The notes: generated by a model from the letters alone, not told the origin. A DNA stretch of 63,623 nt, filler included, from Octopus bimaculoides (GCF_001194135.2; 9 parts of 9 records of this genome joined end to end with filler, not necessarily neighbours in it); one strand, 5' to 3'. Shown: positions 27,799-31,713, counted from the first letter of the whole stretch. Program-made: numbers and translations.

Positions 27799-27933
27799 TG
27801 TGACAACATGTGGTACTTTCCCGGTGTCGAATGTAAAGATTTTATCGAACACCTTACCAATTTAACGAATAAAACTTTTCCCGAACTACACCTGAGAGAA
27901 GATTTGAATTTCACAAGCTACGACGATTTCCAG
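27799..27933 (+). CDS. Internal exon of a putative long-chain helical cytokine-like gene (AB-loop region)
   Basis: ttttctag| and |gtatgt, 135 nt. Only frame 0 is open: CDNMWYFPGVECKDFIEHLTNLTNKTFPELHLREDLNFTSYDDFQ. Phase 0 to 0. Confidence 0.75.
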
Positions 27934-28924
27934 GTATGTTTTTAATGAATATTTCAGTATTTTTACAATCAGCGACTGTTTCTTTAGGTCGACGCCTCTC
28001 ACACTCAATATTTTCTTCATCATTGGGGTTGATTTGAAGAAGAAAAGAAACGGTCATTTTCACGCAACACTATAACCCTGGTGGGTCTCATCTGGGATTG
28101 GAAACGTCCTAATGATTCAGTGGCCTTTGAGTAGGAAAGACCGTAACGAAATTTTTGCTTTCTAAGTGGGTAACAAGCAAATCGAAAGACTAAGTCTTCG
28201 AAGCTTCAATTAAGCTAATAATAACTTCTAACACAAAGAGGATAATCTGATTTGATTCTCTAATCCCGTCTCTTTCAGGGTCTTGTGCTGTAGCAAAGCG
28301 AGAATTTTATGGGCCTTGAGTATACCTCAGGGACAAGACAATGTTTATAGAAAACGGTAATAAATTGAGAGAACGGATAATGGGCTGGAGTAAAAAAAAA
28401 CATTGCACTATTCGGTGTATATAAATATGGATTTATATAATTTTGCCCAAGAATGGTGAGGGAATGTCAGGGTTGCAACATTAGCAGACTAAATATTGGG
28501 ACTAATATACTGTAATCAAATCAGTCGATTATAAACCAGGCTAAATATATATAGAGAGAAGTCAGCATAGTTACTAACAAGTTGTGATATAATAACCACA
28601 TATGTATGTATGTATGTATGTAATGAATATATGTAAGTTTGTATGGCTGCATACAAACATATATATGTATATATTTATACATATACAAGTGTATAAGTAT
28701 GTATGTGTGTGTATGTGTATGTTTTTATTTGTCAAACGGTGGAAAGAAAACGAATTCTTGCTTATTTTCCGTCCCATTTACAAGAATGTATCTATTTATA
28801 TATACAAGTGCGTATTCTTCAACGCTTCAAGCCTTTTTAAAAAAAAATTTGTGTATTGGAATATGTCTTTACTTCACAATTTCAACTACAGCAGCAATTT
28901 CTTGTTATTTCTTCCTCAATTTAG

Positions 28925-29155
28925 ATGACTTTAGTAAACATGACCAACGTAATTTCACAATACAACGCAAGTATCCAAAGCCAGCTAGACAGAGAACTTG
29001 ACTATCTCTGTGCTCCTGCAAAGGAACTCGGAGTTCCGTGCTATTATCCAAATGCTTGTTTTCAAGGAACTTTCAGAAATGATGCCACATTTTTCTGTCA
29101 TTTGCGGAATGCCAATTCACTCTTGAAAGATTTGAAGCTACTTTTAACGCAGATG
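28925..29155 (+). CDS. Internal exon of the putative helical cytokine-like gene (helix B, Cys-rich loop, helix C)
   Basis: cttcctcaatttag| and |gtaggt, 231 nt, phase 0 to 0. Encodes MTLVNMTNVISQYNASIQSQLDRELDYLCAPAKELGVPCYYPNACFQGTFRNDATFFCHLRNANSLLKDLKLLLTQM. Confidence 0.8.
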
Positions 29156-29913
29156 GTAGGTATTTCAATATTAATGGCGACTATATTTTTTTTTATCTAT
29201 TTTGTATCTGTTTGTCTCTCTATTTATTTATCTGCTTATCTATCTATATCGCTCTGCTCTATGTATCCGTGTATGTATGTATGTATGTATGTATGTATGT
29301 ATGTATGTATGTATGTATGTATGTATGTATGTATGTATGTATGTATGTATGTATGCGTGTGTGTGTATGTATGTATGNNNNNNNNNNNNNNNNNNNNNNN
29401 NNNNNNNNNNNNNNNNNNNNNNNNNNNNNNNNNNNNNNNNNNNNNNNNNNNNNNNNNNNNNNNNNNNNNNNNNNNNNNNNNNNNNNNNNNNNNNNNNNNN
29501 NNNNNNNNNNNNNNNNNNNNNNNNNNNNNNNNNNNNNNNNNNNNNNNNNNNNNNNNNNNNNNNNNNNNNNNNNNNNNNNNNNNNNNNNNNNNNNNNNNNN
29601 NNNNNNNNNNNNNNNNNNNNNNNNNNNNNNNNNNNNNNNNNNNNNNNNNNNNNNNNNNNNNNNNNNNNNNNNNNNNNNNNNNNNNNNNNNNNNNNNNNNN
29701 NNNNNNNNNNNNNNNNNNNNNNNNNNNNNNNNNNNNNNNNNNNNNNNNNNNNNNNNNNNNNNNNNNNNNNNNNNNNNNNNNNNNNNNNNNNNNNNNNNNN
29801 NNNNNNNNNNNNNNNNNNNNNNNNNNNNNNNNNNNNNNNNNNNNNNNNNNNNNNNNNNNNNNNNNNNNNNNNNNNNNNNNNNNNNNNNNNNNNNNNNNNN
29901 NNNNNNNNNNNNN

Positions 29914-29985
<72 letters not shown>

Positions 29986-30071
29986 GATAGTTAAATAGAT
30001 AGATAGATAGTTAGATAGATAGATAGATAGATAGATAGATTGATAGATACATACATACATACATACATGCA

Positions 30072-30102
<31 letters not shown>

Positions 30103-31554
30103 TTTCTTACTTGCCTACCTATCGATTTAACCTACCCACTCACACACACAGCAACTTTGAGGGGGGGAATCTAAGCTGGTTATATCGACACCAGGGCACA
30201 ACTGGTACTTATTTTATCGTCCTTGAAAAAATTTTAAAGATATTAACGAAGTAAACGGAAATGTTTTTGATGAAGCCATGATACGGGATTGGATTTCCCG
30301 GAACGCTATTGCCACACACACACACACACATTACACGCCTTTTCATGTATTCTCTATCTCTACCTCTCACTCTCACTCATGCATACACACACACACACAC
30401 ACACACACATACTTTTTCTCTCTTTCCTTCCTCCTTCTCCCACCCTCGCCAACCAATATATCTAACTAAACACCTGACCTTTACATCCGGTTATACCAAC
30501 TTCAACAAGTAAATCCAATTACTTTATCATTCTTCTTCTTCTTCTTCTTCTTCTTCTTCTTNNNNNNNNNNNNNNNNNNNNNNNNNNNNNNNNNNNNNNN
30601 NNNNNNNNNNNNNNNNNNNNNNNNNNNNNNNNNNNNNNNNNNNNNNNNNNNNNNNNNNNNNNNNNNNNNNNNNNNNNNNNNNNNNNNNNNNNNNNNNNNN
30701 NNNNNNNNNNNNNNNNNNNNNNNNNNNNNNNNNNNNNNNNNNNNNNNNNNNNNNNNNNNNNNNNNNNNNNNNNNNNNNNNNNNNNNNNNNNNNNNNNNNN
30801 NNNNNNNNNNNNNNNNNNNNNNNNNNNNNNNNNNNNNNNNNNNNNNNNNNNNNNNNNNNNNNNNNNNNNNNNNNNNNNNNNNNNNNNNNNNNNNNNNNNN
30901 NNNNNNNNNNNNNNNNNNNNNNNNNNNNNNNNNNNNNNNNNNNNNNNNNNNNNNNNNNNNNNNNNNNNNNNNNNNNNNNNNNNNNNNNNNNNNNNNNNNN
31001 NNNNNNNNNNNNNNNNNNNNNNNNNNNNNNNNNNNNNNNNNNNNNNNNNNNNNNNNNNNNNNNNNNNNNNNNNNNNNNNNNNNNNNNNNNNNNNNNNNNN
31101 NNNNNNNNNNNNNNNNNNNNNNNNNNNNNNNNNNNNNNNNNNNNNNNNNNNNNNNNNNNNNNNNNNNNNNNNNNNNNNNNNNNNNNNNNNNNNNNNNNNN
31201 NNNNAATAATATCTGTCGACGTCAACAAAGCAAATTAATTCCTAGAATCCATAAGTATTCTTTGTGGAAAGTTCGGATATATGATTGAAGAATTCTACTC
31301 GAAAGTCACCATTCCTCATACCCTCATAGCAAAAGAGTTCTTACTTAATGAATTTGTTTAAACATTTCTATACACTACACATGCCGTAATGATGATTATT
31401 ACAAAACACTTTCCTGTTAAATTCAATCGATCTTCAGAGTCGTTTCGATTGATCAAAATATTTATGGATAATCGATTTCAGATGACTTATTATAAACTTC
31501 AATCAGATTAATCAAGTGATTCACATGTTGTTGTTTTGTTTTTTACCATTTTAG

Positions 31555-31713
31555 GTAACAACTCACAGTTTTGAAAACACCACCATTGACAACGATTTAT
31601 TGGTCAAGTCAGATATCCCTTTGGTATGGAGCCGATGGTTTTCAATGGTCACTCTCTATCATCTACAAAATCTACTTAATCAAGTGGACAACAAGCTTCG
31701 ATTAAAATTTTAA
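31555..31713 (+). CDS. Terminal coding exon of the putative helical cytokine-like gene (CD loop and helix D)
   Basis: Long T tract + ttttag|, phase 0. Encodes VTTHSFENTTIDNDLLVKSDIPLVWSRWFSMVTLYHLQNLLNQVDNKLRLKF, then TAA (31711-31713), which overlaps an AATAAA. Confidence 0.78.
   Translation, partial: VTTHSFENTTIDNDLLVKSDIPLVWSRWFSMVTLYHLQNLLNQVDNKLRLKF

Follow-up and report, generated by a model that had tools for sequence, protein, structure and literature searches.

A Candidate Long-Chain Helical Cytokine Family in Coleoid Cephalopods

The Locus in Octopus bimaculoides

We analyzed a stretch of Octopus bimaculoides DNA of 63,623 nucleotides (nt), filler included (GCF_001194135.2; nine parts of nine records joined end to end). 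We call this whole stretch the window, and positions refer to it unless another locus is named. A spliced gene at 27799–31713 encodes a protein that an earlier reading, made by a model from the sequence alone, had likened to helical cytokines of the IL-6/G-CSF type. The gene comprises the following features:

25690–26103: assembly gap expected to hold coding exons 1 and 2, on the basis of collinearity with the Octopus sinensis locus L003
27799–27933, plus strand: coding exon 3, the first of the three exons seen in the earlier reading; 135 nt, 45 codons; tattttctag/TGT...CAG/gtatgt; phase 0 at both ends
27934–28924, plus strand: phase-0 intron, GT...AG; both O. sinensis loci contain its homolog
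28925–29155, plus strand: coding exon 4; 231 nt, 77 codons; ctcaatttag/ATG...ATG/gtaggt
29156–31554, plus strand: last intron, phase 0; holds assembly gaps at 29378–29913 and 30562–31204
31555–31713, plus strand: coding exon 5; 159 nt, 52 codons and TAA (31711–31713); accattttag/GTA...TAA

Joined together, the three exons, each of a length divisible by three, form 174 uninterrupted codons followed by TAA. The acceptor AGs sit behind pyrimidine-rich tracts, and the donors are GTATGT for the first intron and GTAGGT for the second. The 174-aa product carries six N-glycosylation sequons (NLT, NKT, NFT, NMT, NAS, and NTT), against a mean of 2.0 in composition-preserving shuffles (P(≥6) = 0.007), and six Cys at residues 1, 12, 74, 84, 90, and 103. 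It has no transmembrane segment, the highest Kyte–Doolittle mean over 19 residues being 0.78. The exons with their phase-0 AG/GT sites, the codon count, the sequons, the Cys residues, and the lack of a membrane span all reproduce what the sequence-only reading had described.

Across the piece of the window that bears the locus, runs of N occur at 21512–21521, 25690–26103, 29378–29913, and 30562–31204. The donor of the last intron lies 222 nt upstream of the first intronic gap and its acceptor 350 nt downstream of the second. Both gaps being far from the splice sites, the reading frame is independent of their estimated lengths. Long microsatellites, (TATG)n, (TA)n, (TG)n, (GATA)n, (CATA)n, and (CTT)n, at 29260–29377, 29914–30100, and 30533–30561 directly border both intronic gaps and are probably the cause of the assembly breaks.

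Ortholog, Missing 5' Exons, and Constraint

The product is 100% identical to RefSeq XP_052824395.1, the "uncharacterized" 171-aa protein of O. bimaculoides LOC128248029. The octopus origin surmised from the sequence is therefore correct, and the gene is already annotated, though unnamed, and not hidden as had been claimed. XP_052824395.1 lacks a signal peptide, its first residue being the internal Met of ...CDN-MWYFPG.... The ortholog in O. sinensis is XP_036359387.1 (LOC118763732; 232 aa; hereafter P0026, at locus L003), which shares 91% identity with the window product across 174 residues without indels. Its N-terminus reads MVCRFITVVLLCSYALQVLG/SPIPSE...NVLQYY/CDNMWYFPG..., and the alignment confirms the start of exon 3 at the Cys codon. 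The 58 N-terminal residues that precede it in the ortholog are absent from the window, so that the 174 residues are not the whole product, as which they had been taken. In the ortholog, the protein crosses the exon 4/5 junction uninterrupted (...LLLTQM/VTT...); the matching last intron, L003 13528–15721, contains no N and no family-like coding segment or open reading frame (ORF).

L003 is collinear with window 20011–34327 at 82–94% identity. On the two sides of the 5' gap, window 23350–25689 corresponds to L003 7612–9959 and window 26104–26484 to L003 10489–10871. The L003 interval between these blocks, 9960–10488, holds the sequence ATGG at 10001–10004, followed by a phase-1 intron, and an exon at 10238–10407. 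This second exon encodes, in about 57 codons, the signal peptide and most of helix A. From the collinearity, the two 5' coding exons fall in gap 25690–26103; accordingly, the RefSeq protein starts at an internal Met and is 5'-truncated. A tblastn search with a paralog N-terminus found no 5' exon in the locus piece because the exon lies in this gap. The exons of the window are thus coding exons 3–5 of five.

Another O. sinensis protein, P0002 (LOC115212847, locus L001), was considered as the ortholog and rejected, since both a cluster look-up and collinearity over the whole piece point to P0026 and L003. P0002 is a paralog about 60% identical to the window product, encoded on the same chromosome 51 Mb away. 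The same three exon junctions are present in these two O. sinensis genes.

Compared with the ortholog, the window exons show 17 non-synonymous and 11 synonymous differences (dN 0.042, dS 0.112, dN/dS 0.37). Their nucleotide identity to the ortholog is 93.5–95.6% (95.6% for exon 3 against L003 12101–12235), versus about 82–90% in the surrounding noncoding DNA. On these substitution counts, this is evidently a coding gene under constraint, yet evolving fairly fast. Between paralogs, the exon that carries the AB loop (27799–27933, against P0002 at L001 11005–11139) gives a dN/dS of about 2.2 (dN 0.41, dS 0.19), and the helix B–C exon 0.33. This suggests that the AB-loop exon, encoding a putative receptor-contact loop, diversified under diversifying selection after the duplication, the counts behind the AB-loop ratio being small.

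A Family of Coleoid Proteins

Relatives were sought with a HMMER profile among 1.84 billion representative proteins, at a cut-off of E ≤ 0.001. Of the 19 proteins retained, 13 reached E ≤ 1e-10; two were the queries themselves, one was a spurious repeat protein of 1517 aa, and the other 16 were relatives. When the 174-aa product was searched against a word index of 5.8 billion proteins, the matches were confined to its own gene and a single O. sinensis relative. All relatives whose source is named come from coleoid cephalopods (Octopus, Argonauta, and Acanthosepion), and every family member is annotated as uncharacterized. The members are:

O. bimaculoides: LOC128248029, LOC128248030, LOC106873702, LOC106871653
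O. sinensis: LOC118763732, LOC115212847, LOC118763924, LOC115213514, LOC118761833
O. vulgaris: two hypothetical proteins
Argonauta hians: several entries
Acanthosepion (Sepia) pharaonis: one unnamed product
Remaining members: a few Logan and ENA fragments (ERZ21867824, SRR6517992)

At least four genes in O. bimaculoides and at least five in O. sinensis keep the same structure. The full-length members are 205–234 aa long and consist of a hydrophobic leader followed by a conserved S/A-P-I and the mature protein; in P0026, the Kyte–Doolittle mean peaks at 1.96 (residue 1), with a maximum of 0.69 over the mature part. A signal peptide and no membrane anchor were found in the ortholog and the paralogs, the leader exon of the window gene being placed in the gap. 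Although the paralog groups are only 25–40% identical to each other, the six Cys are conserved across the family. The tblastn matches of eight paralogs begin at or within 12 nt of 28925, and paralog matches also start at 27799, which indicates that these exon boundaries are common to the family. No further, tandem copies of family genes were found in the locus piece, L001, or L003. A literature search gave no mention of these LOC identifiers or of any cephalopod helical cytokine.

Two database entries have an unusual organization. In P0003 (O. vulgaris CAI9724409.1, 335 aa), the part corresponding to exons 3 and 4 is present twice in tandem, either by a local tandem duplication or by a fused annotation of two neighboring genes. 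In L002, a Logan contig from SRR6517992, the database protein P0010, at 101–757, continues across two in-frame TGA codons. The true ORF begins at an exon-3-like Cys and ends with ...FFQKVMKS*, exons 3–5 being contiguous. L002 may be a partly spliced transcript of a cuttlefish-like homolog and would then be an indirect sign that the family is expressed.

Predicted Structure

Two members were modeled with AlphaFold2, with the following predicted local distance difference test (pLDDT) and predicted template modeling (pTM) scores:

P0002, full length: 16-sequence alignment; pLDDT 84.9, pTM 0.78; helices 25–56, 94–133, 150–175, and 198–225; short helix 65–75
P0026, mature protein (model m4c35e662736b): 17-sequence alignment; pLDDT 83.5, pTM 0.83; helices 13–42, 79–118, 135–160, and 183–210; short helix 50–61

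The two proteins, which are 63% identical, give the same helix map, with high pLDDT in all four helices, and the five models of each run score 76–85. In P0026, the AB loop spans 36 residues and includes a mini-helix, and the CD loop spans 22 residues. Such lengths, about 36 and about 22 residues, are kept across the family and are what the crossover connections of an up-up-down-down bundle need. The predicted fold is that of a four-helix long-chain cytokine, an assignment that we regard as quite likely to be correct.

Helix positions were carried over to the window from the mature P0026 model (mature residue = window residue + 38). By this mapping, exon 3 covers the final turn of helix A, the loop formed by C-x10-C, the mini-helix of the AB loop (27832–27867), and the opening residues of helix B (27919–27933), and it holds three of the sequons. 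Exon 4, where conservation within the family is highest (E..LCAPA....V.C.YP.AC.....DA.FYC.LR), spans helix B (to about 29029), the Cys-rich B–C connection (29009–29098) with its four conserved Cys, and helix C (29078–29155), which finishes exactly at the exon end. Exon 5 supplies the CD loop, in which the NTT sequon lies, and then helix D (31621–31704), which bears the family motif R-W-F/Y-x-M-x-T-L.

The models were compared with 350,542 PDB chains using Foldseek. For P0002, ranks 1–28 are all long-chain class-I cytokines or hormones: the matches include LIF (1pvh_B; E 0.075; target TM-score, TMt, 0.72), G-CSF, prolactin, CNTF, IL-11, IL-27p28, CLCF1, and growth hormone (GH), and IL-6 stands at rank 30. 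For P0026, ranks 1–15 are G-CSF, LIF, and prolactin. Its best matches, each with a probability of 1.00, are the chains 1cd9_A (E 0.034), 5zo6 (query TM-score, TMq, 0.61; TMt 0.76; root mean square deviation, rmsd, 3.1 Å), and 1rhg_B (TMt 0.79). LIF 1pvh_B likewise reaches a probability of 1.00, with TMt 0.70–0.72 and E 0.075–0.10 over the searches. Non-cytokine helical proteins in the same lists, such as AFF4, Sec3/Sso2, and maquettes, have TM-scores of at most 0.33. In a library of viral structures (BFVD), 49 of the 50 matches listed have TM-scores of at most 0.43. These low scores indicate that the model does not match helical proteins indiscriminately, and the viral library, in which no match was meaningful, acts here as a negative control.

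Modeling and a structural search had been proposed as a check in the sequence-only reading. The ortholog and the paralog both gave a long-chain four-helix bundle, with G-CSF, LIF, prolactin, CNTF, IL-27, IL-6, and IL-11 among the top structures. Neither a fold other than such a bundle nor a confident match to an unrelated family was obtained.

One entry of the viral library stands apart. At rank 49, A0A060D3K7 (Bov2.b3 of Bovine gammaherpesvirus 6) was matched with TMq 0.50, TMt 0.60, rmsd 4.9 Å, probability 0.60, and E 3.6. On this structural match, Bov2.b3 may be an unrecognized viral mimic of a helical cytokine.

Intron Layout

The four introns were mapped on the P0026 model:

Intron 1: phase 1; 4 nt past the ATG, within the leader
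Intron 2: phase 0; three to four residues short of the end of helix A, directly ahead of the first Cys of C-x10-C
Intron 3: phase 0; five residues into helix B
Intron 4: phase 0; exactly where helix C ends

Both O. sinensis genes have coding exons of 4, 155 or 170, 135, 231, and 159–162 nt separated by introns of phases 1-0-0-0. They thus show the five-exon, 1-0-0-0 layout of IL-6-type genes, of which the window contains exons 3–5 and the two phase-0 introns between them. The coding exons of human IL-6 measure 19, 191, 114, and 147 nt, followed by the last exon, and the junctions of its three IL-6-domain introns read ...LRKE/TCNKSNMC, ...GFNE/ETCLVK, and ...FLQKK/AKN. In G-CSF, intron 2 directly precedes Cys36 of the Cys36–Cys42 loop. 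The IL-6 layout has been described as one intron within the region of the signal peptide, plus three inside the IL-6 domain (PMC13081863), and the first intron of IL-11 lies 7 nt past the ATG (PMC3271213).

Judged on the predicted structure, the octopus intron positions are structurally equivalent to these IL-6 and G-CSF positions. The breaks that the sequence-only reading had equated with those of IL-6 are indeed so placed: one lies just ahead of the first Cys, close to where helix A ends, the next close to where helix B begins, and the last where helix C ends. All three are phase 0.

Comparison with Known Ligands

The closest structural and genetic resemblance is with the G-CSF/IL-6/MGF family (PF00489). 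The models match G-CSF with TMq 0.59–0.61, TMt 0.72–0.79, and rmsd 3.1–3.5 Å, and IL-6 with TMt 0.66–0.68. Both sides have five exons, with the signal peptide split by a phase-1 intron and three further introns in phase 0 at equivalent structural positions, a small Cys pair after helix A directly behind intron 2, a mini-helix in a long AB loop, and similar size and glycosylation. Unlike this family, the octopus proteins come from a protostome and give no Pfam or hhalign signal and no PROSITE PS00254 signature. Their first two Cys are separated by ten residues, whereas those of the first pair in IL-6 and G-CSF are separated by five to six; the second disulfide of IL-6 and G-CSF, from the AB loop to helix B, has no octopus counterpart.

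For LIF, OSM, CNTF, and CLCF1, the likeness lies in the long helices, the long AB loop, and the Foldseek ranking, where LIF 1pvh_B is at or near the top and CNTF and CLCF1 are listed. In contrast, Pfam LIF_OSM and CNTF gave no match among the product and the members, and the disulfide pattern differs. The F-x-x-K of helix D is also absent: the octopus sequence at the start of this helix is VWSRWFSMV. LIF has three exons and CNTF two, a gene structure unlike that of the octopus gene. The Trp of the helix D motif R-W-F/Y-x-M-x-T-L, which the sequence-only reading had equated with the site-III position, is replaced by Q, L, I, or K in several paralogs; by helical periodicity, it may be a core residue. 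The growth hormone, prolactin, leptin, and erythropoietin (EPO) group shares the fold class (prolactin TMt 0.61–0.65, GH and leptin lower), but with structural scores below those of G-CSF and LIF, other disulfide patterns, and no sequence signal.

The closest functional analogy is with the Drosophila Unpaired proteins Upd1–3, whose receptor is Domeless. These are secreted, glycosylated, predicted helical ligands of a protostome, and likewise cannot be detected by sequence from vertebrate cytokines. The Upds are much larger (about 400 aa) and basic, and the profile search of the 1.84 billion representatives retrieved only cephalopod-type proteins and the spurious repeat protein, with no arthropod protein and no detectable homology to Upd1–3. 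To our knowledge, the insect Unpaired proteins are the only accepted ligands of gp130-type receptors outside vertebrates.

Surrounding DNA

Several features of the noncoding DNA around the gene were recorded. Window 26104–26484, in the intron after the helix-A exon, is 94–96% identical to L001 10412–10860 and L003 10489–10871, more than the neighboring noncoding DNA (80–88%). Gene conversion may have produced this block, or it may act as a conserved regulatory element. An interspersed repeat of about 100–195 nt is present in at least six copies, in both orientations and with 69–90% identity. It looks like a tRNA-derived short interspersed element, judging from a GTTCAAATYC-type box, and has copies in the O. 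sinensis loci too. Copies of this repeat, and the remnants of retrotransposons, are placed as follows:

20661–20855: repeat copy
21570–21764: repeat copy
23169–23363: repeat copy
26677–26929: repeat copy
27180–27333: repeat copy
23628–24542, plus strand: retrotransposon remnant; its ORF at 23628–24242 matches Pfam zf-RVT (PF13966) with E 1.9e-6
33877–34209: second, similar retrotransposon 3' fragment (...TRLKGLK...NGPTLNI...), near the right end of the piece

Interpretation and Alternative Explanations

Taken together, we consider, with a probability of about 0.6, that the gene encodes a secreted long-chain class-I helical cytokine-type signaling ligand of a diversified coleoid family, acting via a gp130/Domeless-like receptor and JAK/STAT. 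The gene is a member of an old multigene family that has diversified, whose proteins of about 205–234 aa would be secreted, N-glycosylated, and disulfide-bonded. The mature protein would fold as an up-up-down-down four-helix bundle, closest to G-CSF and LIF, and be released as an extracellular signaling ligand. By analogy with known ligands, it would attach to the cytokine-binding module of a class-I receptor of the gp130/Domeless type by way of faces that helices A/C, helix D, and the AB loop form, and this binding would activate JAK/STAT. For this receptor and pathway in themselves, we would put the chances slightly better than even.

Several observations weigh against this interpretation. 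Searching the window product and 16 members with Pfam hmmscan revealed no cytokine family even at E ≤ 10, and the Pfam scans of all members gave chance matches alone (E ≥ 0.05). Against the PDB sequences, phmmer with a single sequence found no match, and the family profile returned only noise (F-box/LRR and NKG2-D at E > 2). Using hhalign, we aligned the family profile to human and mouse IL-6 and G-CSF and to LIF, CNTF, IL-11, leptin, GH, EPO, and PRL, with IL-2, IL-4, GM-CSF, IFN-beta, IL-10, and cytochrome b562 as negative controls. The cytokines scored probabilities of 0.05–0.5%, inseparable from the negative controls, with 0.05–0.16% for the IL-6 and G-CSF sequences. The PROSITE pattern PS00254, C-x(9)-C-x(6)-G-L-x(2)-[FY]-x(3)-L, is absent from the product and all members examined, whereas human IL-6 was positive with the same expression. 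The four conserved Cys at the end of helix B, in the 16-residue B–C connection, and at the start of helix C have no counterpart in IL-6, G-CSF, or LIF. The phases are not decisive by themselves either: no intron class is commoner than phase 0, signal peptides often contain phase-1 introns, and by a rough estimate a few percent of four-intron genes would show 1-0-0-0. On the structural side, Foldseek E-values of 0.03–0.1 are not significant alone, the alignments given to AlphaFold2 are shallow (16–17 sequences, many of them partial), and its training included the cytokine structures that are now matched. The likeness to IL-6 and G-CSF put forward in the sequence-only reading thus stands for the predicted fold and the intron layout but not for Pfam, hhalign, or PS00254. 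As hhalign scored the cytokines no better than the negative controls, the residue-by-residue alignments offered there with IL-6 carry no measurable signal.

We infer homology with the vertebrate cytokines from fold and intron layout. The main competing explanation is that a cytokine-like fold arose independently in cephalopods and serves another role, such as that of a hormone, pheromone, carrier, or matrix protein, with no class-I receptor or JAK/STAT. Four-helix bundles evolve easily, and such an origin would agree with the lack of detectable sequence similarity to any cytokine family, with a Cys-rich B–C connection unique to the family, and with the restriction of the named members to cephalopods. 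We nevertheless consider it unlikely. The up-up-down-down topology with long crossovers is, among solved structures, essentially confined to helical cytokines and hormones, which make up nearly all the good Foldseek matches, and the four introns agree in both phase and structural position with the IL-6-type layout. Molluscs also possess an orphan receptor–JAK–STAT module: a 2026 survey reported an IL6R-like receptor, JAK, and STAT together in Mollusca, and IL-6-family ligands only in vertebrates (PMC13203501). The joint match of intron phase, number, and position on the predicted structure with the best fold matches is the strongest argument here for homology over convergence.

A less probable explanation is that the cytokine fold is a prediction artifact, AlphaFold2 having fallen back, on a shallow alignment, on a topology learned from the PDB for some helical protein. 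The 16–17 sequences available, many partial, and Foldseek E-values above 0.03 leave some room for this. Against it, two targets only 63% identical yielded the same helix map with high pLDDT and pTM of 0.78–0.83, all five models scored 76–85, and the AB and CD loop lengths conserved throughout the family suit the crossovers. It is very improbable that the exons represent a gene fragment in decay or wrongly annotated, be it a pseudogene or a functionless chain of ORFs formed by chance. In its favor, the RefSeq model begins at an internal Met with no signal peptide, and the locus piece shows no 5' exon; but the absent exons map precisely into an assembly gap, the frames are intact in both species with dN/dS 0.37 and exons better conserved than introns, and at least four O. 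bimaculoides and five O. sinensis genes retain the structure.

We favor a helical cytokine-type ligand. A more far-reaching version, which we put forward tentatively and at less than even odds, holds that coleoids keep an ancient family of true IL-6/G-CSF/LIF homologs with the ancestral five-exon, 1-0-0-0 layout. The class would then predate the protostome–deuterostome split, and this family would provide the ligands still missing for the molluscan module of gp130/Domeless-like receptor, JAK, and STAT.

Significance

A cephalopod family with the predicted fold and the gene layout of G-CSF, LIF, and IL-6 appears to be unreported in the literature searched. What is new is the phylum, a sequence not recognizable as that of a cytokine, and the disulfide scheme; the fold class and the gene architecture are those already known. 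A practical outcome is that the RefSeq model of LOC128248029 is 5'-truncated through an assembly gap. If our interpretation is true, the family supplies concrete candidate ligands for lophotrochozoan JAK/STAT signaling and makes the question testable at the bench, and the origin of the long-chain helical cytokines would move back to the bilaterian ancestor. The family would then be relevant to cephalopod immunity, hematopoiesis, regeneration, and neurobiology.

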